Source of the DNA: Asterias rubens
Lineage: Eukaryota
DNA length: 64,000 bases
Direction of reading: 5' to 3'
NCBI RefSeq assembly: GCF_902459465.1
Contig: NC_047071.1
Coordinates: 4,774,001 to 4,838,000, forward strand
The notes below the pieces were generated by a model, which saw only the letters and a list, made by a program, of their open reading frames with translations, had not been told where the DNA came from and did no database searches. Shown in pieces: positions 18,561 through 50,723 of this stretch. The stretch's first letter is position 1. Each line of letters begins with the position of its first letter. A program made the translations under genes and the position numbers.

Positions 18561-21387
18561 AATAATTCCAAATGTTTCAATTTAAATGTTTTGGCTGAGA
18601 TGAACCACAGAACCCGTTGGTGTCTTCATCTGTTGATGACTTGTACTGTATGTCTTGCTGTGGTTTATCTTTCCTTGACAGGTTTCTTGTTGTCTGCTCC
18701 TCCTTGAGGAAAACCTTACAATTGGCCAACCATTTGAGGTTCAGGGTCGAAATTTAAACAGAAGCAAACATCATCCAAGGTAAATGTCATCCAAACCATA
18801 AATCAAACAATTAAGAATCCGTGTTACGGATGGTGCTTGAGCCGAATCGGACGTCAATCAGTGGTATGTCCTCTTTTATCTCTTTATAAAACTACAGTCG
18901 TATATGACGTGTGATTGTTGGTATCTTGTGATAAACGTTGAACAATGGCGAACACGTAATTACCAGAGACTCTTTAACTTCATAGTAAACAACCAATGTA
19001 GGTTCACAGATTAAACGAAACGGGAAAAATGGCGTCTGTCTATTCCATCAATACATGAAAATGGTGTAATAGTCCTCGGTGTGTTGGTCATGGTTGAGTG
19101 GACTTCATTATAATACGGTTGGGCATACACCACGCCCGTCGACTCCGTCATGAAGTATAGCCTTCTACTCAAGGCTTTTGTCCCTTTCTTATTATTCATG
19201 GCTTTCTTATGCAAAGCAGGCTACCACACTATGTATTTGGGGGTCACCTAGAAGTAGAGAGTGTTCCCCGAGTAGTGACGAATCGGTGGCTTATTTTGTT
19301 TGCTCAAATCGCCCCCATTCAGACCGCCAAACGGTTCAATGCTTTTTAGGCTTTATTTCTGCCATTCACGGGTCAAAGTGAAAGTGAAGTTAGATTCCAA
19401 ATATTGTATTACCGTGGAAAGTAAGGTTCGTTGAGACAGTTTAGACTTTCAAATTTTTGTTCTCAAAGTTTCATTTTCAAAGTCCCCCTTTTTGAGGGGC
19501 TGGGGAGAAGAGCATTGAATTGCCTCTACCATTTCTGACTGGCGTGTCAATTATTCCAAAGATATTCTTAAAAATTGTGTTTTTTGTTGTTACTTTTTTT
19601 TTTTTAATGGCCATCAATGTCCATCAAAAAATATGCTTTCACGTTAGGAACTGATTGCAATGAAACGTACTGTTTTGTAGGGTAGGCTTCGTACGCCTAT
19701 TATTGGATTGTTTGGATCCGATTAATTGACCTTGTTTGAGGTAAACTCTATTTATTGGTTTCGATTAATATTACAGTATTGGAGATAAGCTGCGTAACTG
19801 AACAGTCTGGTACCAAGATAAACAATTAGCTTGGAGGTTTATCTTACCTGAAATTAATAACCACAAGTTACTCAAATATCGTCTGAAATATTTTTTTACT
19901 TTATTTTCAACAGCCTCATTGTACTTAGAAACGCCCCTTTTCATAGACCGATGGCTTTACTTTCTTTATTTTACACATATAAGGACAAAACACCACTTGT
20001 TTTCCCGTTAAACCTCAGACGAGATACAGTGTGATAGGTTCTGAAAAAGCTGCATGCTTTACCCACAAGTTTGTAAGTCGATGTTACCATATTGCCACTT
20101 CCATATTGAAGTTAAAGATACCCGAGTCACAATTGTAGCGTCATGCCGTTATAGAACGAAGTCTTGTGCAAATGAGACTATGTTAATAATTAGACGTATA
20201 TGCATTTAATCTGCTAATACGATAGTTAAAATTTTACGTCTATATACATCTGTGCAAAGTTGTGCGCACGCACATTACATTACGTTACTATATTTTCCTA
20301 TATAAAAGTTCTATGGCCCGATTTTCGCCGAAAGGAATTTTCGTTTTATAATTTTTTTTCTCTGCAAGCAGTTTGAAAGATTATGTTAATTAAAAAAAAA
20401 AAAACCTACAATAATCTTTCTTTTTAAGCCAATATGACAATATGACAGTCAAAAATGTTTTCGTATGGCTTGTATAAAGGGAATATACTTTCAGGATCCC
20501 GACAATACTTCCTTTGTTTTGTTTTTACTACCACCTGTAGATGGTAAACTTAGTGAAGCCCAACTTTCTTGAATCTAAAAAAGAATAGCTATTTAAAATT
20601 GAAATGTAAATTTACGGGTAAAATAAAATAGGCTACAGAACGGACTGAAAGTGTGGGCAACTCATACGTGCCTTTATGATTTAAATGTTTTAAATCTCAT
20701 AATACTTTTGTGTAAATTCTATTCAAAATATATAAACATCTTTCAGCGGTGAACTTTAAAATAAGTATGATAACAAACTAAAAATTTTAATGATTGAAAT
20801 ACATTCAGAATGCTTAATTAATGTGTTGCCTTCAGTAATGTTTTGTTCGTAAATCATTCAGTTCAATTTAATTCAATTTTTATTGTGAACAAATTAATAT
20901 TTGCTCTGTCGAACATGCCCATAAACGTAAAAATATGACTCGGTTTTAAAACAACAGAGTTAAATATCACTGGTACAAAACTTGATAATTCTTTCACAGT
21001 TTGTCATCTTGTGTGAAATAAAAGAGCGAAATTAGGAGTTGATCAGTTATGTCACGCTACTGTACCCATTCAGTCTCCGTGACGTCATGATACGTTGATG
21101 CGATAGCGGGGGAAAACAAAATGGCTGCCCGCCCGTTGAAACCACGCCACGTAAACAGACATTTTGTTCTGAAATATATGCACGAGTCCGCCACGCCTCT
21201 TTTCTGTATTTTCTTCGTGCCGTATATTAGCAAAAATATATCATATCTTCAAAACAAAAATAGTATTTGTTCCAACAATATCTTCAAATAGTAAATGTAG
21301 TACTATTTGTAAACGTTAAGATAAAGGTAATAGTCACAAAAACACAATTATTCGTGTCTACTCTTGTCTTATTTTTTATTTTATTTT

Positions 21388-22297
21388 TTAGATAATTGCA
21401 CAAACAGACGAAGATTTCTTTGGTTTTGCAGGAGCAGATTTGGGTCTTTCTGGTTGAACTACCTGAGCATGCTGGGGGCCATTTGATGCTGATCTAGGCC
21501 GCTCAGGTTTATCGGGAGACTTTGCAGCTTCTTCCTTGTGATTTACATCCGGGACTTGTTTCAAGGGTTGTTTGTCTCCCGTTTGTTCTACGGTCTGACT
21601 GGGATTTTTAGTTGTAGGTTCTTCTTCTGTTTTTTCCTCTTGACCGCCCTCTGCTGGTAGCTTTTGCTGAATGACCAATTCTTCAACTGTTGCGTGTTCT
21701 TTGAGCTTCTCTAGCAATTCATCAAACTTGTTATCGGTGAAATCTTTCTGGGTTGACTCTTTGGTGAAGTCGATGTAGAGAAGCTGCGCAAAGGGCATGC
21801 TCATTGGACCTTCTGGAGGCCACGTCATCTGCTCCATGAGGATCGGGATAACGGGTTTTCTGAGTGCATCGGAAAGGCTGACCTCTCGACGACAGTTTGC
21901 TGAGAGGGCGTACTTTGGGGTCACACTTGAAACCACAACCTGTGGAAACGAAATATTGCTCATTCATGTTAAGGTTTCATCTCTTAGGCACATTTTACAA
22001 CATTAAAATGTTGAAGTCACACAAAGCTTCATATTTAGCTTCAACATTTTAGAATATCTCTAAAGTACATTTTACAAATAAAAATGTTGCAACAACACTA
22101 ACTTCAGAATGTTAGAATACCTTTGCATTTCTTATTCCTTTATCGATCTTCGAGTAGAGAGGATCTCCTCCACCCATCTGGAGGATATCAAGCCAGCAGC
22201 TGAATCCCAGTGATGTCAATCGAGAGTAAAGTCTCTTAATCTCAGTTTGTTTGTCCCATTGGTAGGAGATAAACACCTGCGGGATCAACTCATCCAC
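21388..22297 (-). CDS. Exons 16-17 of the TIR gene: second TIR domain, disordered tail and CaaX box
   Basis: [23 protein letters not shown]...I..GI.NAK|VVV....[24 protein letters not shown]; the C-terminus is [12 protein letters not shown]. Confidence 0.9.
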
Positions 22298-25200
22298 CTG
22301 TCACGAGGAACAAATCAGAAACAATAATTGGGAAGGTTTTGTCCCGGTTTGTGTACAAAATAATTATAGGTTCGATGATGACTTCTTCTTTCGAGTCCAT
22401 CATCTACTCTTCAAATGCTTGGTCAGGATTGGGCACATCTTACAGCCTTCTCTTTGCTGTCAACAGGTCTTCAAGTCAGCACTGCTCCTCAACGGCTGGG
22501 CATCGTATAGAAGGTGTGGCATAGTGATGACTATAATCCACAGAGATTTATAGAGTTGAGTTTTACCTGATCCTGTGTTGCCGGATTCTGCGTGGATGAA
22601 TTGGTTGATGGTTGAGTACTATCCGCTTTCTTGACAACCTGAGGAAGATCATCAATCTGGGGCACCCAGTTGCGATACTCTGTAAATAAGGAAGGAGACA
22701 AAGGAACAACAATAAGACAATGAAGAATGGCACTTCGTTCATTTTTGTGAAGGCATCATGGATGGTTTTATTGCCAACTTTTAAATATTAAAGGCTGATT
22801 TATAAGGAATTCCATGAAATCTTACCGTCAGTGATCATGTCTTCATCCGGAGCAGCATGGTAACTAATCTGTCCAAGTAGCTCGGCAAACTTGGCATCTT
22901 CCCAAAACTTGTCTCCTCTGATGTATTCCTTGTCGTTATAAAGCTGGATGTAGAGAAGCTGAGCAAACAACATACTCATAGAGCCAGCTGGTGGCCAAGC
23001 TGTCTTCTCAATGAGTACAGGAATGATTGGCTTGTTCAACAGGTTGGCGAGATTTACCTGTTATAGAATAAAAGGCTTCATTGTTAGCATGGATTGAATG
23101 TTATGGGGTACGTCAACGAGGAATACTGCAACATACATTAAAAATGACATCCCACTTCTGACACCATTTTTGTCGTACAACGCTAGGACTCGTTGTACAG
23201 TTTAATTCTGTTTAGCACCGGGCTCTATTTAGTGTACTGTGTACTACTCTGAAGTACACAAAACAAGTTCAACAGGCATTTAATCTTCAATGACTTTCAT
23301 GTGCCGTTTAGAGCTTACCTCTTTATTGCAGTTTTCCGACTTGGAGTACTTCTCAGTGCACATGCAGAGGACTACCTTTGCAGCTCTCATGCCGTCGTTG
23401 ATCTTAGCAAAAAGGCTATCACCACCTCCCATCTGACCGATATCCAGCCAGCAACCAAAGCCAGCTTTCTCAAGATGTTCCTTGATGACTTTCACCTCTG
23501 CTTGATGATCCCACTGGTAGCTGATGAAGACCCGAGGGGGTTTCTCTGACATGTCAGGGGCAGCCTTTGGTACCAGAGCATCTAGCATACACGGAAAATT
23601 CAAATTATTGCTTTGATGTGCCAAATGCTTTTTTTTATATCATGATCAATTTTCGGTTAAAATTTAATTACCCGACTCCGTTTTTGTGTTTTGGATTAAT
23701 CACTACTTTGGTACAATACCCTAAAACAACTTGTAGTGTATGCCAAGTTATTTGGAAAGAAATGTGTTTGCTGTTTTTAAAATGTTGATGTATTGAAGAC
23801 TATACGTTTGCTGTGAGAACGCCAAAAAGTGACTAGTATTAAAACGGAGATACTATTAAAACGTCATCACTATGACGTCATCATACCTGCAACTTAATTT
23901 GGTTACCGTTGTAAAAGTATTGATGTATAGAATAATTCGTCTGCCGTGAAAACACCATAATGTAACCAGTGTTAACTGGAGATACCAATCTACGTCATCA
24001 TACCTGCAGATTGCAATGATTCCTCCACAATGGCGGACGCATCTTCTCTACCCATATCCTGTAATGCAGTCAGTACAGCATACGTAGCTTCACTACTCTT
24101 ATGTACAGTGTACCATTCCGCCAGTAGGGCCATCGTAGGGTCTGGAGACAGTGCCCAGTTGCGGACATCTTCTCCTGTGAAGCCAAGACGGATAGCCAGG
24201 TACCTCCAATCGTGTTCATGCTCGGGGTTGAGAAGCTTGGAGACGTCTCGTGACCACTTTGGTGCATTGGTGATCGTCTGAATTTAAAAGATGTGATACA
24301 AAATGTTGATGTTCATTGGATCTAAAGTTAACTTTGACACAAATTGTCTTCTCTTTTATAAGTAGCCATGTTTGATAAACTTGTAAAGGTCTTTGACAAT
24401 ACTAACTTTGTGATCGATTTCGTCAACTTTTAACACCGTGTCGTCAACCACTTCTTCAAGCTCGTCCAGCCTTTCACCTTGTTCCACAACCTCGTTCTTC
24501 ACATTGTCGATCTCCTGGCTTTGCTCTGTTACAGTCTTATCAAGTCGATCCACATTCTCCTCCGTCACGGTTACTCGGGTATCCAAGGTCTTGACGTCAT
24601 CTTTGACTTCGTCCACTTCATCAGCAAGAGTTTCCAAGCTGGAAAAACATAGGGTGCGTTCGTTTAGCTTCCCTGGGTCGACCCGTCCTGGTGTGTGGCG
24701 TTTTTTTTCCCCAGGACGAACGTGTGCAGATAATTACCCACGATCGTCCTGGAAGAAAAAACCGCCACACACCGGGGTCGACCCAGGGAATGCACCCATA
24801 TTGTGATACAAAACCTTACCTCAACGGTACTACAATGTGTTTATAAGTGGCCATGATTGAAACACTTATGAAAGTCTTGTGAAAAAATTGTTTTATTGCT
24901 TCTTCTTGAAAACAAATGTATTACACTTTCAACTGCCTCACTGTCATTTGTTCTTGACAAGTTATCATAGGCTGGCTTTATGTGCTAAACCGTCTGTTAT
25001 AATGGAAGGGGGGGGGCTTTGTTTTAATTACGAATATAGAAATGAATTAATCTTACCTCCGACCTTCCATAAAGTCTATCAAACTCTGTATAAGATCAGG
25101 CACACCCATCTGTTGACTTGTCTTAAACGGTTCAATAACAGCTCTGTACTTCTTCAAGATTTCTACGTATTTTCGGCCAACCCTCTTCATCTCCATTAAG

Positions 25201-28200
25201 ATGGTACTAATCCACATGTCGTCAGATGTCTTCAGCTTGTCTGTGAATATTTTGAGGCAACGGTCAGCTTGTTTCTGTACAAACACAGAGAGAAATTTTC
25301 AGTTACCATCGCTGTACTATAGTTTGCTTTCGAACACAGTCTGGGTATCAAAAGAGGTCAAGTCGTCTTGCTAACAGCAATAAAAGCAAATGACATACCT
25401 AACGTAAAAGCCAGATTCATACTTCATGCGAATTTTGACGTCACAAATTCGCAGCGTCGCATCAGTTGAGCTCCAACAGCTCAATTTGACTTGTGACGTC
25501 AAAATTCGCTTCGTAGTTGCATTCGCAGGAAGTTCAAACTGCTTTAGAGTTCTACTTGTAGCAGCAGTATCGCTCTTACCTCATCAATTTGGCCGACACT
25601 TGCAACTACCTTGGCTACAGCGTGGATCGTGTGTGGTGTCTGCTTAGTCACCCGTAACAACTTGTCGATCTTGTCGACAAAGAGTTCTGGGAATTTGATC
25701 GACACAGTTCCTAGGACCATGAGAACCTGATGAGAAAGCTGACCATTTGTTACGTCACCCATCATCAGATCGACGTAAGGCACTAATAACTAGAAAAAAA
25801 GACAAATTTAACTGGAGTGAGGGTTTGAAAACTATGAAAAGCTTATGTACTTCTAACTAAAAGTTTTTTATTGCCATTAATTTTTAAACTACCAAACTTA
25901 TACCTTCCATTTAAATTACCAAGTAACTTTCGAATGGTTAGTTGATGATTTTAAAAAGTATTTCGTTACTTGGGTTACACTCGGTTTGTTTACCTTAACC
26001 CCGTTGAAATGGTAACACATTTTTACACTTTCAATTCAAATAATTTACAACTTTACCAATAATGACTTTTAGAAAGGCTTATCATATATACCTTGGCGTT
26101 ATCCTTGGCTACGTCATCCCATAACATATACATGTAGGTTTTGTTGGATTGATTCATATCTTCCATATACTCAGCTAATTTGTCGAACCTACTCAGAATT
26201 GGTTCTGGACTTGCGGCATATAGAGGCTTCAAAACAACTGTAAAATAAGGTAAAATAAACATCTATTGACCATAATTCTCAAGGAGAACTTTAAAAATGT
26301 CATGGTGTGTGGCAAAACCAACAATTATTGAAAGTATAAGCCCCTTACTGATAAGGTTAAGAAGTAAAAGATAAACTTGAAACTAATTCATCAAGGATTG
26401 TCAAATGAGCAAGAAAAGTTACAAGAACACCACCTTAAAGGAACGTTACAGAATTGGTAAGAAACAAAAATCCTGAAGATCACAGATTTACATCAAACTT
26501 ACACGGTCCAATGATGATGATAAAAATTTAGTTGAAAACATCCCTTGAAATATTTATGTCTGAAATGTCATATTTGATGAGAAATAAATAATCTTACTTC
26601 GCGTTTGGAGTTGATCGCTCAGTGAGCGTTTTATTCATTTTTATTTTGGCATCGATGCAAAGCAAAATTTGTAATCGGTTGTTCACCATTCTCTCGTGAT
26701 CTAGATGGCCGATCGATCTCAAACTTCGACAGGTTTGTCAGTTAATGTATAGGGTGGATTACATAAAGTACACTGCCAGCAACAGTTTTGTTAGCAAAAA
26801 CCAATTCTGTAATGTTCCTTTAAATAAAGTCTGAAAAACTAATTTGGTGTTGATCTAAAATTGTCATTTTGAGATTGTATAAAAAACCTGATGTGGCTAG
26901 CACTTATACAATTAGGACTTATATCGGCACAATAATTATAACAGCATTATTTGAAAGCAGTTTGCAGGTTTTTTTTTAAACACTGAAAGATGTCCTTCAA
27001 TATATTATAGAATATTGTGTTGTGTTGTAAACAGTTTGAAGTAAAATTGAGACAACATACGGCCAATCATGTCACTTTTCCCAGCCAGGAATACTTCTAT
27101 AACATCATCAGCACATGGTGCGAGTAGATCTATTTGTTGGTAGAACCTTGTAACACAACCAGATGCTACGGTAACCAACGTCTCGCAGTCTCCTTTAAGA
27201 ATCGTCATCACTCCCGGGATGAAGTCTTTGATGGCCCTTGCGTTACCACAGTGCTGTGGGGAAATAATTAGGAATCAACTGTTTGGATGATGAGGACAGA
27301 GAATGAATGATTGATAAAGAGTTGTTGTTCCTCTTCCAGAATTAAGTGATTTACAGAATCAATGATGACTATCTTATCTTATCATGGGAGGGTCCTCTAC
27401 TGTAAAGAATTGAAGTGTTTCTTGCGATTTACATGTACCGTCAGTAGTAACTACCTTTTAGGGGAAAAAAAAACAGGGAGACGGTGTTCTATTTAGAACT
27501 TGTATTCCTTTATATTCTACTACCACGGGGTAGATTTTCGGAATTCGGGTGACAAGAAAAGAACTGTCCTGCTTATAACCGTAAACCAAAATTGATACCT
27601 CACCAAGCAATGCCTGAAATCCCATTGACTGACCCACCTTAATAACGAATGCAGAGCAGATAGTCAACGCTATGAGCCCCCATCCTGAGTACGGTTCACC
27701 GTCCAACTCCTGTGTCAGCACAAACTGGAATATTTCATTCAACTCCTTCGCATATTTTGATGGTGCTCTGAATATCAAACAAAAGTATAAAGTTGAAGAA
27801 AATGTCAGATGTGCCATTTCGATTTAGTCATAACTCTGTTTGCAAGCTTTCCAATAGCTCTTATATGAAGTGATCAGATCATACTGGTAGAAATTTTGAG
27901 TTGTTAACCATCGGCTCTTTCCAGAACAACCACTACTCAAAAGAAATGTACATGTGGTGTTCCGCATCTAACATGATTAAACTCTTTTGAAAAAGAAAAA
28001 AAGAAGGAATTCAATAGAGGTCGCTGTTTATTGTATGTTAACTTTATTCAATAATTCACATAGAATGGAGAAATAAAACACACAGTGATATATAATAATA
28101 ATCAAAAGAAGTAAGTTCCAGTTTATTTTGGAGCCTTCTACAAGGGCATTTGTCGCATTTTTTTTTGTCTAAGGAGCAACTTTAACACGCAATAATCACA

Positions 28201-30889
28201 AAATGATGATACAAATTAATGTGAACAAGATTGAATATACCATTGGAATGTGCTCACATTTGTGACATGACATCAATTTGGAGAAATACATGCAATATTA
28301 GAGCATTTCCGTAATATTTCAAATTAATACACACTCCACATCTACTTACTTACCCAGCACCTGCTAATGACGATTCTAATGTACTATTAATGGCTTTTAC
28401 TTTGTCACCAGATGAAGATTCCAAATCCAAGTCTCCCGATTTAATCCACACACACATGGCACGTATAATCTCAGCAAGATTATTTTCTGTCCCCTGTTTA
28501 GAAAAAAAATAATATCATGACCACATGTCAGCAATGAACTAAGTTACCAAAATATTATTTGTTGTTTTGTTTGTTGAGATATTTACCTCCCAGGTTATGG
28601 TATGCCATGAGTTTGAAACAAACGCCAATGCTTTAACAATTTGTAAATCGTCTGGTGCCTTGAAGAAGACCACGATGACCTCAACCATGAATTTGCTCAC
28701 TTTCTTCAAAATCTTGTCTCGGCTGAAAAATAGTTAAAGAGAATTTTGTGTAAAAGTTATTTACATAGAACGCGACCACCTTTTGAAATGATTGTATACA
28801 TTTTCATTTCGGCCTATACAGGATTAAAACGCTTGAAAAGTTCCAAAAACTGAAGATATGCTTTGCCTTTAAACAAATTATTGAGAGGGTCTATAAGCTA
28901 ACAAGTAAAGTGTAATAACTGCATAATCAGGGCCCAATTTCATAGAGCTGCTTAAGCAAAAAATTTGCTTAAGCACGAAAATAGTTCGCTTATTTAACAC
29001 ATATTACTGGCAAAAAATGTCATGCCATGTCCACTGCTTGTGACTAATATTTAGCTGTTGTTTACTTAGCATAACAATTGAGTGGAGTCTTAGCCGGTAA
29101 TCTGATTTTACAAAGCAAAGATTTTTTTGCTTAAGCAACATTTTTTGCTTAAAGCAGCTCTATGAAATTGGGCCCAGTCTTTAATTTAGTGACATAATAT
29201 GTTTTTGAAATTATCTGCTGTTATTAAGAACTTACTCAAATGCTTCCATCATTTTCTCGATACATGACGTCATTGCCTTGCCTATTTCGGTGTCACTTGG
29301 TTTGATGTCTTTACCCCACCAATCGTCCTTTTCAGTTCTGATGAGTTTCACTGGAGCTTCAAACGTTTTGATCAGTTTCTCAGCCAATGGGATGCGTTCC
29401 TGCGAAGAAAGTTATCGACAAATTTGTGCTTTACCTTTCTATAGTTCTTTTGTGTTTGGATCTTTTAAAGGCAGTGGACACTATTGGTAATTGTCAAAGA
29501 CTATAGCCTTTACATTTGGTGTATCCCAACATATGCATAAAATAACAAACCTGTGGAAATTTGAGCTCAATCGGTCATCGAACTTGCGAGATAATAATGA
29601 AAGAAAAAAACACCAATGTCACACGAAGTTGTGTGCGTTTAGATGGTTGATTTCGAGACCTCAAGTTCTAAATCTGTGGTCTTGAAATCAAATTCGTGGA
29701 AAATTACTTCTTTCTCGAAAACTAGGGCACTTCAGAGGGAGCCGTTTCTCACAATGATTTATACCATCAACCTCTCCCCATTACATGTACTCGTCACCAA
29801 GAAAGGTTTTATGCTAATAATTATTTTGAGTAATTACCAATAGTGTCCACTGCCTTTAAATAGGCATACGTCAGTGTTTTAAAGCACTCCGATCTTTGAA
29901 CGGGCGCTATAAATATGCCTTTATGTAAATTGTAATGTAATGTCATAATATTCGATGAAATAATCTTGAGCACGAGTTGCAAACATTTTAAAATTCTCCT
30001 GAAGACGAGCAGAGTATACTGTTCGAAACGTCTAGACACAACCGGCTCTTTTCAGAGCCAACACCCACCCTAAGAGATTTACACATGGTTGTACCCGCAA
30101 ATTTACTATTTATTTATAGTTTCTTCTTATTTTAAAATGGTTAACAGATCATGGAAATTTGCATCGGGGATAACAATTATAAATTTTGGTTTTACCCACT
30201 TAAGAAATCTTGTTTTTCAATTCAAAGATGGTTAAAGTCGAAGTTTGTCTGGCTTGTCTTTTTCTTTCCTGTTTGGCCAACTTAAGACATACCTTCCAAT
30301 TTATAATCTTTTTGTCCTTAAACATCTCAGCAGCAAGCTCGTAATACTTAGTTGTTCTTTTCTCAAAGCAAACTTGACATAACTCCACCATTTGGTTCTC
30401 GTATTTATTTTTCCTGAAAAAGAAGTGAAATATTAGAAAACTGTTTACTCCCAAATCCATTGAAGTTAAGCTCCAATTTGAAGTCCTCTCCAACCGGGGT
30501 AAAATATTGGGGGGGGGGGCGGGGGGAATGAGTTTAAAAGAGAGAGAGAGGGGCAATGGCATTTCAAATAAAATCCTGCAATAGCTCAGCAACATTTTAC
30601 ATGGAATTAGTTATGGCATACTTTAAAGCGTAGGTTATTCTTGGCTGCAGTTTGACATAGCTACTTCTATTTTCACACTTAAAAAAAAAAGTAATGATGT
30701 ACGTTAAAAAGGTTCTTACTTTGTTTTGACTTCTTTCAGCATTGGTCTTGTAAGTGCATCACTTAAATCATCGCTCCTCTTGAGATCGTCTTCATCATTT
30801 CTTATCATCTCCAGAACTTGAGGCATGTAAGTCTCAATAGCCGTTGGATCTGCTTTGATCAATTTGGCCAATTCCTTCTTGCTCGCCAT
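21388..30889 (-). CDS. Melted/VEPH1-like ARM - coiled coil - Death - TIR - TIR - CaaX protein, 17 exons, 1156 aa
   Basis: Exons: 30889-30720, 30413-30293, 29399-29236, 28722-28587, 28493-28354, 27767-27638, 27253-27061, 26237-26092, 25789-25580, 25274-25057, 24638-24407, 24277-24004, 23581-23319, 23057-22826, 22679-22567, 22297-22121, 21939-21388. They total 3471 nt in one open frame with canonical GT-AG sites and matching phases at all 16 introns. Confidence 0.9.
22826..23581 (-). CDS. Exons 13-14 of the TIR gene: first TIR (TIR_2-type) domain
   Basis: [23 protein letters not shown]...I..GM.AAKVVL....[10 protein letters not shown]|[13 protein letters not shown]. Confidence 0.9.
24004..24277 (-). 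CDS. Exon 12 of the TIR gene: Death domain
   Basis: Translation (absent from the ORF track): [88 protein letters not shown]. It shows the Death-fold pattern DW..LA..LG, P...LL..W, L..AL..MGR.DA..IV. Confidence 0.85.
24652..24797. mobile_element. Small MITE (GGGTGC ends, 3-bp ATA flanks) in intron 10 of the TIR gene
   Basis: GGGTGCG..TTCCCTGGGTCGACCC..GGTGTGTGGCG / CGCCACACACC.GGGTCGACCCAGGGAA..GCACCC. Confidence 0.75.
25407..25545. mobile_element. Small degenerate MITE in intron 9 of the TIR gene
   Basis: Inverted repeats GCGAATTTTGACGTCACA / TGTGACGTCAAAATTCGC and ATACTTCATGCGAAT / ATTCGCAGGAAGT. Confidence 0.6.
26439..26819. mobile_element. TTAA-TSD MITE (family C) in intron 7 of the TIR gene
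   Basis: TTAA|AGGAACGTTACAGAATTGGT...ACCAATTCTGTAATGTTCCT|TTAA. Confidence 0.85.
28928..29177. mobile_element. MITE with GGGCCCAATTTCATAGAGCTGCTT TIRs (family G)
   Basis: Terminal inverted repeats with CAG on both flanks; a degenerate relative lies at about 5385-5570. Confidence 0.8.
29469..29855. mobile_element. Family-A MITE in intron 2 of the TIR gene
   Basis: Family-A TIRs; TTAA at both ends. Confidence 0.9.
29990..30120 (+). mobile_element. Penelope-like terminal-repeat fragment with a minimal hammerhead motif
   Basis: TTCTC-CTGAAGA-c-GAGCAG(agtata)CTGTTC-GAAACGTC; same family as 3800-3925, with fragments at about 52155-52260 and 52985-53045. Confidence 0.6.
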
Positions 30890-32578
30890 GTTGCCGTTAC
30901 TTTGTGTTTTAACTGAAGGAAATTCTCCGTATACCGCTAGTCTTCAATACCAGTCAGTAGTTGCTGGTTCCACGCTTCACAAGTTTACCTCCATTTTTTA
31001 TTTCAGAGCCTGAAATTGGAAACACGAAATTTGCTCATACATGAACACAGCAAACACTCCTCACTTAGGCACCGATAAGAACAATTTTCTTCTCTCAATT
31101 TTGGTACGAACATTCGAAGATGATTCACCAGCAATATTTGGATTGTCTGAAAGAATGGCTGATATGGGTTCCTGTACAGACACTTCCGCGGTGAATTGTA
31201 CTTTTGATGAAAGTGTCAAATGCACAACCAAGATATCCTTAGTTACAATCAGATGCGGAAGTGAATTCACCTTGGCATGGTTTGATTACTTTGGAACACC
31301 AACAGGGCCTTTAGCAAACTTGACCTCACAACTATTATAGGCAGTATTAATGCTTGATTAAGGGATGAATTTAGAACAGATCATGGAGGTAGAAATAATC
31401 AGATGGAATGAAAAGTTTAAAACTTGATGTAAAACAACTTATAATCGCCTTCATTCGTTACTTAGGTTAACATTTAAAAATTTACTGGTCAATTAAGAAC
31501 ATAATTATGCGGCAAAGATTTTCAATTTTGTGAAAGCCAGCGTCAACCATTCACTTCTATTAAAATGTTTAATTGATTAAAGAACTTAAACTGAAGAAAG
31601 GTGAAGATGTATGAATGCCTATTGGAATATGATGACTAAAACAAAACCATCATGTGTTCACAAAAACGAAACTGAATGTTTACAAACAAACCAAAATGTG
31701 ATTGAGTTATTAGGGGATAATTTGAATGCGTGTTTTTGAAATTGAATTAATTTTTGCTGAAAATACGATATTTTATGCAATTGATTCCCCCAAAATAACA
31801 AATTACGTATATAGAGAGTGTGATGTCCACGCCGTGGGTCTAATGGCTGTGCACGGGTAGCCTATCAATAGTCGGTGATTGGGGGACATTTTCTATTCGT
31901 CATTCAGTTGAGGAAATAGTTATGTTTTGATACGGGTATACCAGACCACAAACTCGCGTGACCTTGCCCATCCGTTTTCCCCAACATTTCATGCACACCA
32001 CACAAACACAATCGTGTTCTATTTACACTTTTTAACTACCATTGTATCTTCCCAGGCTGAATATAGTTTCGAACCTAAATAGGTAGCAATTCTAGAAATT
32101 GAGGAAATCCAATGCGTGAAAACCAAGAGGTGTAACGGGAAGACTTATCTCTGGAACCGAAACTTGGGTTCTTTAATAATTGCTTTTTCGATGTGGATAA
32201 TTCCTGTTGATCTTGGTCATTTACTTTCGGTTCAATTTTGGTCGAAACAGTCGCTATTAAACACGCTCATCAACCAAGTACAACAATTTATTAGAAAAAC
32301 CCAATCTATTTAAGCTACGAAATTTTGAACTTGGCAGAGAGTTTAGGATTAGGAATTTAACATCAGAGACATTAAAGTCTTGGTTTACTGCTCATGTCGG
32401 TAGTTTGTGTACCTCGAAGTAGCTATACGCTTTGAGGACATGGGGAAATGTGATCCATTAGCTAACATCAACTCACTGCTTATTCAAATGCAAATATAAT
32501 TTTTGGATGTATCTTGAAGTGTCCAACACCACATCATGCACGGTAGCACCCACCACCACCTCTTCTCCTCATCTTTAA

Positions 32579-33221
32579 AGGCAGTGGACACTATTGGTAA
32601 TTGTCACAAATTAGCCTTTACTGTTAGTGTATCTCAACATAATTATGCATAAAATAACAAACCTTTGAAAATTTGAGCTCAATCGGTCATCGAACTTGCG
32701 AGATAATAATGAAAGACAAAAACACCCTTGTCACACATGACCGATTGAGCCTAAATTTTCACAGGTTTGTTATTTTATATATAAGTTGTGATACACGAAG
32801 TGTGGGCCTTGGACAATAATGTTTACCGAAAGTGTCCACTGGCTTTAAGATGGTTTCTGAAGCACTACCAAACGTACACTTTCTCATTCACTGCCTTGCT
32901 AGGTGGCCTTTAAAGACTAATTGTAAAGACTAGCCTTCACAGTTGGTGGATCAAACTTGCGAGATAATAATGAAAGAAAAAAACACCCTTGTCACACAAA
33001 GTTGTGTGCGTTTAGATGGTTGATTTCGAGACCTCAAGTTCTAAATCTGAGGTCTCGAAATCAAATTCGTGGAAAATTACTTTTTCTCGAAAACTATGGC
33101 ACTTCAGAGGGAGCTGTTTCTCACGATGTTTAATACCATCAACCTCTCCCCATTAATCTTCATCAAGAAAGGTTTTATGCTAATAATTATTTTGAGTAAT
33201 TACCAATAGTGTCCACTGCCT
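32579..33221. mobile_element. Composite family-A MITE carrying a templated insertion (family-B end + 61-bp spacer + second family-A end)
   Basis: Outer family-A TIRs with TTAA on both sides; 32737-32913 is an exact reverse complement of 47937-48113. Confidence 0.85.
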
Positions 33222-36109
33222 TTAAAACACCCGACACATACAACATCCCCACCAGTTTCCTCCCACACTTCCAGCCCGTCCCTCGCCACAGCCACCCATT
33301 GACCTTTAGAAACAAGATCGTAAACATATAATTTTTCAAATATCACGTACTGTGAAGTGAAAATTTGGGCAATAAAAATGTCAGACTTACCACAGCAATA
33401 CAGATTTCACAATATATCTTGAGGAATGTAAAGTAAAGTGTTCCATAAAAATAAAGATTCCAGGTAAAGTGCGAACCCAACAAGTCAATCAGTCAACAAT
33501 GACAGGTGTATGAAACTGAAAAGCTAGCCTTGTACCTTGTACAAAAGCATTGGATACTCAAGGCACATGGCAATAGCTGCATGACTCGCCTCAATAATGG
33601 TACGTGTATATGGTTACGATTTATTGACCAAAATTATTATGCATAAGGTGGTACTCGCCGACTTCATGGCAACAGGGACAAGCAAACACTATACCATTGC
33701 CGCCATATTATTATCATCCACGGCATCTTCCAGGATACCACTGGTATGCCGAAATAGACTGGTGCAAGCGGCAGAGGTGAGCTTTCTAACGTATCATCAA
33801 GGAAGCCGCGAACCTTGACCAACGGCTATGGGCGAGGAACAAGGTCAAGTTCAAGTTCATCTCATCATTTTATAGTCGGAGTTACCTATAACTTTGTTGT
33901 TCAATAGGCCAATCGCTATCGCAATCCTTATCCCCGAGGCAAAACCATATCTATGTATTCGGTTTCCTTGTCTAAATTGATATGATCATTCACAGTTTTT
34001 GCATGAATTTTTGTTGCCGTTCAACGGCAGTAGCAACCAACTAGCTCGACTAGCTTGATTAAATCCGAAAATCACCTTAAAATGTATAAAGGTTATGTCA
34101 TGTTTTGTATTAGTCGTAGTAGTTTACATGGCCAAAGTAGCATTCACATCACATATCAATATCGGATCTGGCTATTAGTGTCCTTCGTTAATCACTAATT
34201 CAATATTTGCCCTAGTTTTGACGTCTGTCGTAGTCTACAGTCAAGGCGCACTCTAGATGCAACTGTATTAAACATATAAGATCACGCTTGAATTGAGACT
34301 ACATCAAGGGCAAAATGGCTGTACACATGTTTGATACGTTTTTATACTTGTTATTGGCACACATTTATAATTTTTTTTAAATCATTTACAATACAGTTTA
34401 TTTTGTTGACTTTGTCTGCCCCGGTGTTTTTAGGGTGGGAGTCCGATCATTTTGATAACACTCCACTTGAAGCACTAACACTTTCAAACCAACAGATGGC
34501 GCTAAACCTCCTTGATGAATCTCCCTGTCCTAAAAATAGAAACGGGAGGGACGAACTTTCGTGAGTTTGCTCTATGGATATACACATCTACACAAAACCA
34601 ATAACAAGAGAAAGAAAAAAGGAATTCACTAGTATTCACGTCTTGTGCTAATTGACTTGGTGGCATTTAGTCGTAGATGGCTCATGCTAATTCGTAGATA
34701 TGAGATATAAATCATAATATAGGACTTGCACTAAGGTATACTATAGCTGTTTGTTCTAAATTTTCCTTTTAACCTTTTCAAGAGCAATACAACACTTATA
34801 TAAAACAGCTTGGTTCGTATTTAACAAGCTTATTCAAGATTGGCTGAAGTAAAGCCATCCTCAATACAGGCAAACATTTGATATAGCGCCCTCTATCTGT
34901 CAGTGACCACATTCATTTGATCTTACGATTTTGTGATTTAGGCAGGAAAACAACCAACGTCTCAAAGCTTCTTAAGTTATGGTTTCATGAAAGTTGGGTA
35001 GGCCTTGTTCAACGTCGATTTAATGGTGACTATGATAAGACTGAAAGAGAGCCCAACGTGGGATATTGTTTGTCCCTGATGTTTGGGTAAACCCCGAGTT
35101 AAAAGATTGCAATTTGTGATAAAGCATGACTCATGAATATTTCCCATTGTGCAATTTCTCCCTTACCCTTTATTTTCAATTACGCCAAAACAAGATCAAC
35201 CTGTTCAAGCGTGTATCCGTACGTGTTTTATAACTTGACAATGGATTTTGATTGGCCGAAAGTCTGTCAATTTGCAGAGTCTATTATAGTCTTCGTATGT
35301 ACGTTTATGCATTGAATCCAGTTTAGTTTTTGCACGCAGTTAGCAAAAGATAACGCTTGAACTCATGTCAAACGTCTTGATACGCAAGCGAAACGTCTCG
35401 ATCCTAGGCTAACGAATAAAGCCCCGCCCATCGTCCATCGCGCAGATAATTGACTCTCCTGTTGACGTCCGTGTTGGGAATTCCGATTCTTGATTGAGAA
35501 AGAAAGAAAGAAAGAACACATTGTCAGAAAGTTTCCCCTCATATTGAGGTTTCAGATCGGTGCTGAACTCTTGAAGAAGGTTAGTAGATGATTGTTGTCG
35601 ACATAATCGAAATTAATGTCACCTACAGAAACGAAGTTTGTTTTCCAAGCGAGGGTCGGAGACTTGCGTCCGAAAACTGGGCAATGTTTACCCGTATGTT
35701 TGTGTCAAGTTGGAGTTGCTCCTCCTAGCTTGATGCACCCAGTGAAATAATGGCAGACAAATCATAAAATATTATAAAGGTTTGGGGGAATTTAATTTGT
35801 GCACGTCCTGTCAAAAGCTACTAATAAACTGCCATCTACTTATTAATAAAAATATAAAAAAGGTTTTATCTATTGATTTTGCACAGGCCAGTTGACAGAC
35901 ATGACATTGACAGAGGCAAGTCAAGTGTGCACTGTCAAAACAACTTGCCCAATAAATAAAATTTAAATGTAGTTTTTGAAATTTTGAATTGATATTAATT
36001 ATATGAATTTATCCGCTAAAGAGCAGTTTCCCAGAGAGGGACATTTGGCAAAACGTACTTTCCTAGTAGGTAAATCTCAACTACTTCTAGAAACTATTTA
36101 ATAAGGCTC

Positions 36110-36422: not shown

Positions 36423-37671
36423 AGGCTCCTGGCTCATGGGGGAGCCGTAAGTTTCAGGGAGAAATACATCTCAACCAGTTTATAGCCTGTAGAATAGTTG
36501 AAGAAAAATACAGGAAGCTGAGCTATCACGTTCTAACTCTCGCCTCATCCTAAACAGAAATGTTGCTCAATTTTGTTTAGATTAGCTCCCTAGTCAGTTC
36601 CCCACCTGTCACATGACATTCACTAATAACAAATGACGCGTTTTGCCAAGTACCCAACGGCATACTAAAGACCGCACTGCATGACATGCTTACTCTACCC
36701 GCATGCACCACGTTTTTTTTTCAACAAGCACCCACTTAAGAACTGAGTTGGTTTGTTTTCATAGGGCATTTTTTTCAACAGGAAGGTACTGGGACAGAAG
36801 TGGAAATTGTTTTTAATCATTATAATTGGGGGTATGTGTTGACGTGATACTACCCACTGTGCCTGTATGGGAGGCAGTAACTCTTGTTTTGCTAACGGAC
36901 AAAAAGATTGCCACTTAACACTTACAAGATATTGAGATACTCTCCCATAGTGGTAATAGTTACACCAAGGACGAGGAGAAATGGATGGAATTTTATCAAA
37001 GAACTCACTGAGAAACATTTTTCAAATTCTAGGTGTAATTTTGTACCGTACTGTAGACAAATGCGGGAATGAAGCTCTTTTATTGAGTAAAATAAAACAC
37101 ATATCTTACCGTTTGTTCACCTTTGATTGAGAAGAAATTTTTCCCAAAGTATTTCACAGAGAAGAATTTTTATTAAAAAAATGGCAAAATCAGTGGTGAA
37201 AGTGGAAGCTTGCAAAATTTTGTGAACAATATACATAAAAAATTAATAACAGAAACAATTAAAGCAAAACCCAACTTCTTTTTTAAAGCCTTAAACCTCT
37301 ATCATGTGGTGAGACAACATTTATTTATTCATTGTAATGTTTATTTCTCTTATCAATGCAAGCCCCACTCATTCCATTTAAGCAAAACATAGAGTATTTG
37401 TGTAATAGGCCTATATGATATTTTCACGCCACTGCTGATTCTTGGGAAAGTGACATGGGGTAAAGAGCCCCCTAGCAAGAGATCAACTGATGCCAACACC
37501 TGTGTAAGATCGCTGTGTTGAGTCAAGTATAAAATGATTGCACAGCTTCCTTTCAAGTGCCTCAAATGATGTAGTTATAACAGTAATCTAATTTTGCTCA
37601 AAGATGCAATGTTAAAGTAAGATTCTCTTTAAAGAACTTTTTTTCCTTCAAAAAGGCCTCAAAATGCCCAC

Positions 37672-37920
37672 TTGCTGTGGTGCCCTGTGCTTTTGCTGTG
37701 GTGCCCTGTGCTTTTGCTGTGGTGCCCTGTGCTTTTGCTGTGGTGCCCTGTGCTTTTGCTGTGGTGCCCTGTGCTTTTGCTGTGGTGCCCTGTGCTTTTG
37801 CTGTGGTGCCCTGTGCTTTTGCTGTGGTGCCCTGTGCTTTTGCTGAGGTGCCCTGTGCTTTTGCTGTGGTGCCCTGTGCTTTTGATGTGGTGCCCTGTGC
37901 TTTTGCTGTGGTGCCCTGTC
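37672..37920. repeat. 21-bp minisatellite (GCTGTGGTGCCCTGTGCTTTT), about 12 copies
   Basis: Read directly; it explains the 7-aa periodic ORFs in several frames. Confidence 0.95.
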
Positions 37921-40900
37921 CACGAGTCCTGTACAAATTAACATTTTCTTCATAGAGGTGCCCCTTACCTTAGGGAAATTTGCTGTGCCCCTTCAAGTCA
38001 AGAGAGAAGTTCAAGGGCTGGAAACTGTGATTCAATTTATCACTTAAAGACTTGCACCAATAAAACTGTCAAAGTGACATTTTTGTGCAGAACTTATAGG
38101 CCTATAACTTGTATTCAACTTATTACTTAATGACTTACACAAACAAACCTTTCACGAGAAACACTAATAGACCGTATTGAGTATGACGTCACGCGGCTCA
38201 AATATCTGACCTACAAGATGGTGCGTGTGCGTGCGTGTGTGGGTGCATGTGTCTTAGAAATCAAACCGGGAATGACGCACATGCGTCTTGCCCTACAAGA
38301 TGGCGACTTTTCATAGCAAATTGTGAAACTGTATTCTAAGGATTGATTGCTAGAAACCTTTGTTCAAATTTGGAAATAAAACCTTTCGAGAGAGACTCTG
38401 CTAAGGTAAAAACATCCGTCCAGCCACTTACTATTTTTGCAAAACCCAAACTAGTCAAAGTTCAGATATCTTGTGTGAAATTACTTGCAGTTTTAAGTGA
38501 CCATCATCCTTGACCCCTGGCCTGAGTATGGCTACTGTGACCGCACTGACCATGACCTTGTTAAACCAATTACTCTCGCCTACTTCCAGCTGCCCTTAAG
38601 GCATGATGCACAAATCTTAAGATGATCCTCTACAGACATGACCTATCTTGAGGACATCTTCTAAGGTGCCCATACAAGACTTCTCAAAAGGAGAGGCATC
38701 TAACCTGGTGGTCTTGAAGCTTATCACCTGCTACTTGTGGTTTAAGTGTTCAGACCCAGCACTCCAGGCTGTTTGTGGTTGAGACTGAAATCAAACACAA
38801 GAAGTGGCAATGAATGTGGTTTTTTATGTTATGAAGTAGCCCCTTTTTTGGGAAAAACAACTTTAAACAGTTAATGTAATAAGGAATTCAAATTAAACTC
38901 ATTTAATATTGATAAGTTGGTCATTTAAAACATTATAGTGTATCTGCCTTTTTTGATGAGAAGATGTGAAGGTGTCAAGTTATACAGAAAAGAAACCATT
39001 TATCTGTAATATTTTGTTCCCTTTCCCTTTTTTATTAGTTTTGCAGGAGATATCAACAAATGAAATGTTGAAACATTGTAGCTCACTTTTTGAAATGGCT
39101 CTGACCTTTCGAAAGGTCAAACCTCACTACCATTGAAGTTTTTTGAATGATGACCAAACATTACGTGTTTATTTTACCACAATAGGAGGCACTTCAGAAG
39201 AGGTGTTTGCTTCCCTGAGTTATTGAATCAATAGAAGACATCTATACCTTGACCAGCTGGTGAACTTTGTCTCAAGTACTCAAGATGATGATGAGGACAT
39301 TACTTGAGAAATCTCAAGTTGAATTGAGACGTAAGTAAACGAGTTGTCATTACAACATCTTTAACTGATTCAAACTGATTGTACTGATTGTATGATGGCA
39401 TCATTGTAGAAAAGAATACATTGGTGTTTATTGAACTTAGAGTCTCAAGAATGTAGCTTTGAGCATGTGAATATGTGGATTGTTCATAAGAAAATAAAGT
39501 AGGTCCTTTCACCTCTGCAAACTGGACTTAAGTTTGTCTTTTTGCAGATTTATGAAGGAATGCTTTATTATGCTTTTGTAAACCACTGTTGGCTCAACAG
39601 TGTAAATTACTAATGGAACACCAAAATGGGTAACAATATATGAGTTTTATTTGAAGATGCTGAATCATTGTGTGATTGGCCTAGCCATCCCACCATATTT
39701 CAATATTTTGTGTGCACTTAAAAGTAACTTTGTTTGAGTTGTTCCCAATGTATGTAGTCGTCTTGCTTCTTGTGATATATTGTTTGCTAATGATCAAAGT
39801 TAGGTCAGAAAGTTGAGCTGTCTTATTGTGAGGTTGAACCATGGATATGATCTACGATGAGTTATGTTGACTTCCCTAACCTACCGCTTAGAACCTTTCA
39901 TATTAATCCCTTAATCCGTACTCAACACCTGTCATGGAATAAAATAAACTAAATGCTTAGATTCTACTTTGATCTATAGCAGTTTCCTCAAGGTTGTTGA
40001 CAAGCTCCTTGAGAGCAGGATGCTTCCTTTCAACATTGCCGTCAAATGCTCATAAATAACCTACTATGTACATTGTTCAATGTTGAAGTTCAAGTGCACT
40101 TAACCCATTGGTCCAAATAGGAGTCTCTAGAGATTCGGGGTTTTGAAGCTCGTCTTAAAGTCTATTTTCATAATCTCCTGGGTGGACAAACTTTATAATG
40201 GATCAAATGTTCAACAAATAGAAATCTTGCCATCTTAAGAAATATTAAAATTGATGAGCGACAAAGTTAAGTCCTTTAGGGAGCTGTTTGTATCACATCA
40301 CAAAATATAATCTTTATTTATAAATAATAAAAAAGGGGCTTTTATCATTCCTAACTAATGTTGGCTCCACGGGACTGGGGGAGGATCAGTTCCCAGATAA
40401 ATATTCGACTTCCTTTCTTTCCTTGCGATTGTTTTCATCACAGGATTTTTGCCCTAAGGTGTTGATCCAAAACTAACACAGCAAAGTAGTTTCCTTGCCC
40501 CAGGGTGGACCAGTTAGCGAAGCGAGGGTACCTTCAGGTACCTTTTTTTTTTTTTTTTTTTTTTTTACAGGAATGAAAGTTCTTTGTGGTCTGAATGTAA
40601 ATCAAAAACTTGAAATTGAGCCAAAACCTTTGTTTAAATAAGGGCATGCAATGTCTCAGCTGATCAGCTGATTTTTTCTATTTTTTTTACCATGGAAAAC
40701 TGAAGACACTGTACAGTTTTATGAGCCTCGCAGTTTCTTCTGTTAGTTATATAAGTCGCATTTTTATGCCTGAAATTAACAATGTGGAAACTCCTTCATG
40801 AATCCAAATGAAGTAAACGTTTGAAGGAAATGTTACTTGTTTGAGTTGAGGAAGACACTTTGACCACATATTGTGTAAATTAAAGAGGGAGATTGCCTTG

Positions 40901-49613: not shown

Positions 49614-50265
49614 TTAAAAATAAAAATCAATGTATAGATTTTAGGTACAACATCTCTCTTATTCCTTACTCCTTCCTCCATGATTCTTTCGTTCTCCATG
49701 GTTCCTACCAGGATAAATACAATTACAGAATCCCCCAAACTTGTCATTTTCTTAAAGTGCCTCTCTGACCAGGGTCAATCTTATTGACTTTCCATCTCAT
49801 TCTCCCTCAAGTCTCAAACTCCATCAGCGAGAATCTAGAGTGAACAAACTTATCAGAATTACAGGTGGAGTCGCTCTGGTAAATTACCTAGGAGTGTGCC
49901 CATTCTTGGATTTCTTGAGATGTGAGAGGGATTTATGAGGTCACAATGATGACAACTGAGTTATTCCCTTCCAAGTGTTATATAAAATATCCCATATGGT
50001 TCGGACAGTTTACACAAATAAAAGCAATACTTGATTTCATTGGTTTACATTGGTTTTATGTGTACTTCTTAAAGACCTTTATCACGGTGTGGACATCTTG
50101 ATTTTACTCCATTCCAACTCATTGTAACCAAACTGAGGCTGGACGAAATAACAGTTTGGTGCCATGTTTGCGCAATGCATGTTAGCATTCATTACTGTAA
50201 TTGGACACGGGGAACATGACCAAGATGGTGACAGCGTGATAAAGGTCTATACCCAACAGCCTTGT

Positions 50266-50723
50266 GGTTATACAGCCATCTAACTTCTCAAACCACCAAG
50301 CCACTGTCCTGTAACGGGTTATACAGCCATCTAACTTCCCAAACCACCAAGCCACTGTCCTGTAACGGGTTATACAGCCATCTAACTTCTCAAACCACCA
50401 AGCCACTGTCCTGTAACGGGTTATACAGCCATCTAACTTCCCAAACCACCAAGCCACTGTCCTGTAACGGGTTATACAGCCATCTAACTTCCCAAACCAC
50501 CAAGCCACTGTCCTGTAACGGGTTATACAGCCATCTAACTTCCCAAACCACCAAGCCACTGTCCTGTAACGGGTTATACAGCCATCTAACTTCCCAAACC
50601 ACCAAGCCACTGTCCTGTAACGGGTTATACAGCCATCTAACTTCCCAAACCACCAAGCCACTGTCCTGTAACGGGTTATACAGCCATCTAACTTCCCAAA
50701 CCACCAAGCCACTGTCCTGTAAC
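50266..50723. repeat. 51-bp minisatellite, 9 copies
   Basis: Unit GTTATACAGCCATCTAACTTCCCAAACCACCAAGCCACTGTCCTGTAACGG; copies 1 and 3 carry TTCTC instead of TTCCC. Confidence 0.95.

Follow-up and report, generated by a model that had tools for sequence, protein, structure and literature searches.

The window analysed here is a 64,000-nucleotide (nt) stretch of the genome of the sea star Asterias rubens (NC_047071.1, positions 4,774,001 to 4,838,000 of the forward strand; positions in the window are counted from its first letter), AT-rich animal DNA in which short coding stretches are interrupted by introns. On its minus strand we assembled a 17-exon gene that runs from an ATG at 30889 to a stop codon after 21391 and has GT-AG borders at every intron. 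With the exon 7 donor at 27061, its product is a 100% match to P0014, "uncharacterized protein LOC117295983 [Asterias rubens]" (1156 amino acids, aa). The protein consists of an N-terminal helical extension, an armadillo-like solenoid, a coiled coil, a Death domain, two TIR_2 domains, and a C-terminal CaaX box. A first-pass annotation of this DNA had placed a solenoid resembling the N-terminal domain of Melted and VEPH1 at 28722 to 25057 and proposed that it had been fused to an innate immune effector module, with a CaaX box in place of the PH domain. Both limits of that interval fall on true minus-strand splice borders, exon 4 starting at 28722 and exon 10 ending at 25057. The analysis described below shows that exons 4 to 10 encode an armadillo-like solenoid (aa ∼145 to 545), a genuine if highly diverged paralogue of the VEPH1/Melted N-terminal domain.

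Evidence for transcription was taken from contigs of public runs, whose RNA status is presumed. Spliced contigs join exons 5 to 13 at the borders of the gene model, one contig of 3027 nt covers exon 5 through exons 7 to 13, and the joint between exons 10 and 11 (25057 to 24638), where the solenoid meets the effector half of the protein, was found in contigs of two runs. The fusion gene in the window is apparently transcribed.

The relation to VEPH1/Melted was examined at the level of structure with an AlphaFold2 model of P0014 residues 1 to 545, an all-helical solenoid with a predicted local distance difference test score of 89.5 and a predicted template modeling (TM) score of 0.82. When the model was searched with Foldseek against the Swiss-Prot section of AFDB, ranks 1 to 7 were occupied by all seven VEPH1/Melted entries (E 1.3e-11 to 3.9e-7; 15 to 18% identity) in the order zebrafish (1.3e-11), mouse, human (1.5e-10), rat, two Caenorhabditis proteins (∼8e-8), and Drosophila melted (3.9e-7), with P0014 residues 145 to 545 aligned onto VEPH1 residues 17 to 377. 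The next Swiss-Prot match was Armadillo (E 7.4e-6), and the generic ARM background lay at 9 to 12% identity. Among the AFDB fold clusters, the best seven were named melted, VEPH, or "PH domain-containing protein," apart from one without a name. In the ESM Atlas shape search, the first row was a chordate PH-domain cluster (363 residues at 4.0 Å) and the second was "VEPH1 homolog 1" (TM-score by hit 0.80; root mean square deviation 2.9 Å). The PDB returned a generic ARM/HEAT background (best E 9.2e-6), with no VEPH1 entry among the matches. The solenoid thus has VEPH1/Melted at the top of three fold libraries, a specific resemblance that goes beyond generic ARM/HEAT repeats, as the first-pass annotation had supposed.

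The reference for sequence homology was a gene of the A. rubens genome (G000) on contig C19, rather than a curated VEPH1 entry. It was found with a 27-residue probe based on the PH domain of human VEPH1, which was used as a lead only and had a single match in the genome (G000:C19:5854999-5855067; E 3.2e-4). In the 60 kb around this match, a profile of ten aligned solenoids from the family of the window protein (profile A1) matched four consecutive, colinear minus-strand open frames just upstream of the PH match, with E values of 1.4e-6, 7.5e-5, 0.19, and 0.97. Six exons spliced from the ATG at 5861972 gave a C19 solenoid of 373 residues, against which A1 scored 113 bits (E 2e-32 at Z = 30000); a single colinear alignment paired profile positions 219 to 540 with residues 47 to 372. 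Pairwise phmmer comparisons of the C19 solenoid with family members gave E values of 8.7e-20 to 7.2e-7, and BLASTP with the Patiria protein gave an E value of 1.2e-19 at 24% identity over 345 aa. In the control comparisons, 500 shuffles and the reversed C19 sequence scored no more than 6 bits, and generic HEAT proteins scored no more than 9 bits against the C19 solenoid. Identity of the window solenoid to the canonical C19 solenoid is 21 to 24%. The short motifs that the first-pass annotation had listed in VEPH1 order are all present in the spliced translation of exons 6 to 10, as IALTICS (exon 6), DFIPG and DLLAP (exon 7), PEPI (exon 8), SVGQIDE and KQADRCL on the two sides of the exon 9/10 junction, and ILMEMK (exon 10); the C19 gene has its counterparts in the same order, QHSEAL, IASDIMS, VLPV, SLLAL, PGPI, AVGRLNQVNGKECM, and VLIEIK.

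Downstream of its solenoid and on the same strand, the C19 gene continues with a low-complexity linker exon of ∼300 aa, further short exons, and two PH exons that match PF00169 positions 2 to 35 and 33 to 104 and join in frame. As predicted from these exons, it is a separate, canonical solenoid-linker-PH gene of the VEPH1/Melted type, so that a PH-bearing VEPH1 does exist elsewhere in the same genome, a point raised in the first-pass annotation. This makes the window gene a domain-level paralogue and not an orthologue with a swapped tail; its product, which has no PH domain and comes from a locus other than the canonical one, is not a VEPH1 orthologue.

The window gene and the C19 gene also share an exon-intron structure. 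Each has six introns in this region, with phases 2, 0, 1, 0, 0, and 2 in both (Table 1), and the chance of six equal phases is ∼1/729 if the phases are taken as equiprobable. Three of the six positions coincide. For the last of these, intron 10/11, the profile alignment stops just short, and FMEGR of the window protein was aligned by hand with DMTYR of the C19 protein; the arginine and two bases then coincide in the two genes. This last shared intron, of phase 2, is the point at which the genes diverge, VEPH1 continuing into its linker and the window gene into the coiled coil. Divergence at a phase-compatible intron is, as read from the two gene models, a signature of exon shuffling.

Homology at the sequence level extends over residues ∼219 to 543; it starts at the end of exon 5, runs to exon 10, and lies mainly in exons 6 to 10. 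C19 exon A (residues 1 to 69), taken alone, had no sequence match to the family profile. Of the VEPH1-like span of exons 4 to 10 proposed at first pass, the part from exon 6 onward stands on sequence, and exons 4 and 5 belong to it through structure alone. Residues 1 to 144 (exons 1 to 3) form an additional helical extension without a VEPH1 counterpart that would seem to lengthen the solenoid.

Table 1. Exons of the window gene, related loci in the A. rubens genome, and introns shared with the C19 gene. Positions are those of the window unless a contig is named.
Feature	Position	Strand	Description
Exon 1 (start codon 30889)	30720..30889	minus	aa 1-56; N-terminal helical extension, without VEPH1 match; from P0014 identity and tblastn with the Patiria orthologue P0012
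Exon 2	30293..30413	minus	aa 57-97; N-terminal extension; from tblastn and gene model
Exon 3	29236..29399	minus	aa 98-151; N-terminal extension; from tblastn and gene model
Exon 4	28587..28722	minus	aa 152-197; stretch superposing on VEPH1 begins (structure only); spliced contig joint 28586 to 28492
Exon 5	28354..28493	minus	aa 198-243; VEPH1 match by structure only; followed by a phase-2 intron; spliced contigs
Exon 6	27638..27767	minus	aa 244-287; counterpart of coding exon 2 in the C19 VEPH1-type gene (hidden Markov model alignment); flanking phases 2 and 0 as in C19
Exon 7	27061..27253	minus	aa 288-351; DFIPG and DLLAP; corresponds to C19 exon C; transcript-like contigs stop at 27061/27062
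Exon 8	26092..26237	minus	aa 352-400; PEPI; corresponds to C19 exon D; 3' intron of phase 0 coincides exactly with C19
Exon 9	25580..25789	minus	210 nt; aa 401-470; SVGQIDE at end; corresponds to C19 exon E, of equal length; both flanking introns exact, phase 0
Exon 10	25057..25274	minus	aa 471-542; KQADRCL, ILMEMK, and FMEGR at end; last VEPH1-like exon; E 1.4e-6 alone; phase-2 donor
Exon 11	24407..24638	minus	Coiled coil, first exon past the fusion point; Pfam SlyX and other coiled-coil-type matches at aa 549-635; spliced contigs
Exon 12	24004..24277	minus	Death domain; PF00531 E 4.8e-11 (exon) and 7.1e-11 (P0014)
Exons 13-14	23581-23319 and 23057-22826 (22826..23581)	minus	First TIR_2 domain, PF13676
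Exon 15	22567..22679	minus	Linker joining the two TIR domains
Exons 16-17	22297-22121 and 21939-21391 (21391..22297)	minus	Second TIR_2 domain (PF13676, two stretches), low-complexity tail, lysine-rich stretch, and CaaX box CAII before the stop
Canonical VEPH1/Melted-type gene (L018-L020)	G000:C19 ∼5861972-5854253	minus	Six solenoid exons, linker, short middle exons, and two-exon PH domain; splice chain from linker to PH partial
Second complete copy of the window gene (L015, L017, L016)	G000:C14:7617468-7631133	plus	From N-terminal extension to CaaX
Intron 5/6			C19 intron A/B; phase 2; offset of 3 codons in the profile alignment
Intron 6/7			C19 intron B/C; phase 0; offset of 1 codon
Intron 7/8			C19 intron C/D; phase 1; offset of 5 codons
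Intron 8/9			C19 intron D/E; phase 0; same column
Intron 9/10			C19 intron E/F; phase 0; same column
Intron 10/11			C19 intron F/G; phase 2; same position by hand alignment

The effector half begins immediately after the last shared intron. A Pfam scan of P0014 identified the coiled coil, the Death domain, and two TIR_2 domains, with no match to PF00169 and no SAM domain; this, together with the spliced contigs, bears out the proposed fusion of a VEPH1-like solenoid lacking the PH domain to a Death/TIR module with a CaaX box. The nearest solved chains of the Death domain are the death domains of p75NTR and NRADD, and the nearest solved TIR domains are the bacterial-type TIRs PdTIR, Cat1, and AbTir rather than those of vertebrate signaling adaptors. 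A CaaX box follows lysines in all 11 family members examined, reading CAII in the window protein and CAIL, CTLL, CCIL, CCVL, or CCVS in the other ten. That the CaaX box would stand in for the PH domain in membrane targeting is a reasonable inference.

Proteins of the same architecture, including the CaaX box, are encoded by Asterias amurensis, Acanthaster planci, Patiria miniata, Holothuria leucospilota, Anneissia japonica, and Antedon mediterranea, and the database names of the family proteins are limited to "uncharacterized" or "Death domain-containing protein." Antedon mediterranea has four paralogues (P0004, P0008, P0009, and P0010) on one 22-Mb contig, a lineage-specific expansion; the model of P0004 has what seems to be a retained intron (aa ∼137 to 185) and is missing the N-terminal extension. 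In A. rubens itself, the second complete copy on contig C14 has per-exon protein identities to the window gene of 68 to 91% in the solenoid and 89 to 98% in the coiled-coil, Death, and first TIR exons, and the stops within its high-scoring segment pairs fall where those pairs enter introns. Between sea stars and crinoids, identity is 21 to 22% in the N-terminal extension, 36 to 40% in the solenoid, 75 to 77% in the Death domain, 81% in the first TIR domain, and 75 to 76% in the second. Judged by these identities, the solenoid is evolving much faster than the Death and TIR domains, and the two A. rubens copies show the same contrast.

We regard as highly likely the full explanation that exons 4 to 10 are a diverged paralogue of the VEPH1/Melted N-terminal domain that was shuffled onto a Death-TIR-CaaX module, with the solenoid as input and the Death and TIR domains as output. 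The most likely origin would be a duplication of the 5' exons of an echinoderm VEPH1 gene with retention of their exon-intron structure. At the phase-2 intron that precedes the linker and PH exons of VEPH1, these exons would have been joined to exons for the coiled coil, the Death domain, two bacterial-type TIR_2 domains, and the lysine-rich CaaX tail, and three more helical exons would have been gained at the N terminus. The fusion would be older than the crown echinoderms, having arisen before crinoids, sea stars, and sea cucumbers separated, and the canonical gene with its PH domain has been kept elsewhere in the genome. In the protein, a prenylated CaaX tail with its basic patch may hold the molecule at the membrane, as the PH domain does for VEPH1, and the coiled coil may form an oligomer. 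The fast-evolving VEPH1-type solenoid could then act as a partner-binding or regulatory input and the conserved Death and tandem TIR domains as the output, through adaptor assembly and/or cleavage of nicotinamide adenine dinucleotide (NAD+). Domain order, conservation of the CaaX box, and the pattern of conservation along the protein suggest that this is probably how it works.

VEPH1 and Melted are found mostly at the plasma membrane through their PH domain; the VEPH1 solenoid is a protein-binding module with ALK5 as a partner, and TSC1 and FOXO are retained at the membrane by Melted (PMC6734325). The window protein resembles them in its N-terminal armadillo-like solenoid (in fold, in sequence, and in six introns of equal phase) and in having a C-terminal membrane-targeting device, which in its case is a predicted one, the CaaX box. 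Unlike them, it has neither a PH domain nor a long disordered linker and instead carries the coiled coil, the Death domain, two TIR_2 domains, the CaaX box, and an N-terminal extension of 144 residues. Unlike VEPH1, too, the window gene is not the single VEPH1 locus of its genome, the window gene and the C14 copy being additional loci.

Several observations weigh against this interpretation. The orthology of the C19 gene to human VEPH1 is argued from its architecture, its similarity to the family, and the Foldseek matches that tie this family to VEPH1. Between the two genes, three of six introns are out of register by 1 to 5 codons, and exons 4 and 5 match VEPH1 residues 17 to 69 by structural superposition only. 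Word-indexed homologue searches with the crinoid protein, the Patiria protein, and the family profile recovered the echinoderm family only, and no VEPH1, among the candidates examined; a phmmer search with exon 9 over 1.84 billion representatives recovered members of the family, short fragments, and a pair of generic HEAT proteins, again with no VEPH1. We attribute the latter result to the query, 70 residues being too short at 20 to 25% identity, and the former is probably due to a candidate set limited to 8000. No echinoid or non-echinoderm member of the family was seen in the homologue searches, which could have missed such members. When the A. rubens genome was searched exon by exon with the profile, the window gene and the C14 copy were the only matches, and the C19 gene surfaced in the local search alone.

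A different account of how the protein works takes SARM1, an ARM-SAM-SAM-TIR NAD+-cleaving enzyme (NADase), as its model. The solenoid would autoinhibit the protein or act as its sensor, folding onto the TIR domains until a ligand or partner frees the NADase, and the coiled coil would replace the SAM domains in oligomerization. The order of ARM-type N terminus, oligomerization module, and C-terminal TIR parallels that of SARM1 as generally known, and the ARM part could be regulatory in both. The bacterial type of the nearest solved TIRs is in keeping with such an activity, as are an S..C..E motif, read in both TIR domains at the place of the NADase catalytic glutamate, and the combination of a fast-evolving input with a conserved output. 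Against it, P0014 has no SAM domains and its Death domain has no counterpart in SARM1, its solenoid is of VEPH1 type, and it adds a second TIR domain and a lipid anchor; SARM1 did not appear in the top 30 Swiss-Prot or the top 50 PDB fold matches of the solenoid. We consider a SARM1-like mechanism possible, if on the unlikely side. Adaptors of the MyD88 type offer a looser comparison: they too have a Death domain directly before the TIR domain, and arthropod MyD88 has a C-terminal membrane-localization domain (PMC7075850). Among solved structures, the Death domain of the window protein is nearest to those of p75NTR and NRADD rather than MyD88, and its TIR domains are nearest to the bacterial-type TIR_2. 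Its TIRs are in tandem, and a large N-terminal solenoid and a coiled coil are present as well; it is only loosely MyD88-like.

The solenoid might also serve as an integrated decoy or guard, as the first-pass annotation had suggested: by mimicking VEPH1, the copy would let a pathogen factor or a perturbed growth-pathway component that targets VEPH1 set off Death/TIR signaling. The genome does retain a canonical VEPH1 that could be the guarded protein, and both the lineage-specific duplications (two copies in Asterias, four on one Antedon contig) and the fast divergence of the solenoid are typical of immune sensors. A decoy would, however, be expected to track its model, and the identity of 21 to 24% makes the solenoid a poor mimic, which argues somewhat against a faithful decoy; nor is any effector known to target VEPH1. 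We judge this reading improbable. Plant NLRs with integrated domains are an analogy only: they likewise have a copied host signaling domain fused to a TIR immune module with the original gene kept, whereas the window protein has neither NB-ARC nor LRR and belongs to an animal lineage. Pursuing that analogy, one may speculate, at rather long odds, that the family is an animal counterpart of the plant integrated-domain receptors, in which a prenyl-tethered VEPH1 solenoid reports interference with VEPH1 as a TGF-beta/TOR/Hippo scaffold, or binds the clients of that scaffold, and sets off Death/TIR signaling or NAD+ depletion.

Two further alternatives would dissolve the finding itself, and we give both hardly any credence. 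The first is that the solenoid has a generic ARM/HEAT similarity and no specific relation to VEPH1/Melted. Pfam found no family on the single solenoid exons and weak Adaptin_N/HEAT matches only on the ten solenoids; the ESM Atlas feature search led from the solenoid to clusters of MMS19-like HEAT proteins, and from C19 exon A alone to noise. The two HEAT proteins matched by exon 9 (P0003 and P0005) point the same way, and the TM-scores to VEPH1 are just ∼0.45 to 0.57. A generic relation does not account for VEPH1/Melted entries standing four to six E-value orders ahead of the background in three libraries, for the 113-bit colinear match to the C19 solenoid with clean shuffle controls, for the pairwise match at 1e-19, or for intron phases and positions in common with C19; the homology to VEPH1/Melted is specific. 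The second, that a VEPH1-like gene was merged in annotation with a neighboring Death-TIR gene, invokes a common annotation error and the presumed RNA status of the runs, but single contigs lacking at least eight introns span exons 5 to 13 at exact GT-AG borders, the frame is kept across the phase-2 junction, and the architecture recurs in three echinoderm classes and in the full C14 copy, so the gene is therefore not an annotation chimera.

To our knowledge, no invertebrate deuterostome TIR protein has been known to carry a VEPH1-type domain. A literature query pairing VEPH1 with "TIR domain" gave nothing related, its sole match being a paper on human variants and Zika that is unrelated by its title and abstract. 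The family would thus add a new input domain to the TIR repertoire and a new domain architecture of traceable origin. It would also be a clean case of exon shuffling, in which the break falls at a phase-2 intron that has been conserved and the donor gene survives in the same genome. For the poorly understood VEPH1 solenoid it amounts to a natural experiment, the domain now being coupled to an output in cell death or immunity, with a lipid anchor taking the place of the PH domain. VEPH1 has been described as single-copy, with no paralogue in any species (PMC6734325); that statement would be revised by this family, a domain-level paralogue in which the solenoid was reused early in echinoderm history.

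Within the window gene, an unused GT lies at 27076, 15 nt upstream of the exon 7 donor at 27061. Splicing at this site would leave the frame intact and shorten exon 7 to 178 nt, exactly as long as C19 exon C, and the site may be the ancestral exon 7 donor. As the present donor it was ruled out, P0014 and the transcript-like contigs both using 27061. An Rfam scan of window positions 20000 to 32000 gave no match. In introns 10 and 7, the stretches 24574 to 24937 and 26394 to 26939 had contig depths of 1e3 to 1e5 in the four runs examined, with many unattached ends and unusual joints; evidently they belong to abundant dispersed repeats, possibly transcribed. Upstream of the gene, 29491 to 29843 and 32957 to 33340 are similar stretches whose open reading frames (ORFs) have peptides in common, and they look like one dispersed repeat. 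Two tandem arrays were also seen in ORF translations, at 37598 to 37936 and 50182 to 50806. One has a short unit read as QGTTAKA in more than 10 copies, and the other has a unit of ∼48 nt, read as YRTVAWWFGKLDGCIT, in ∼9 copies and on both strands.

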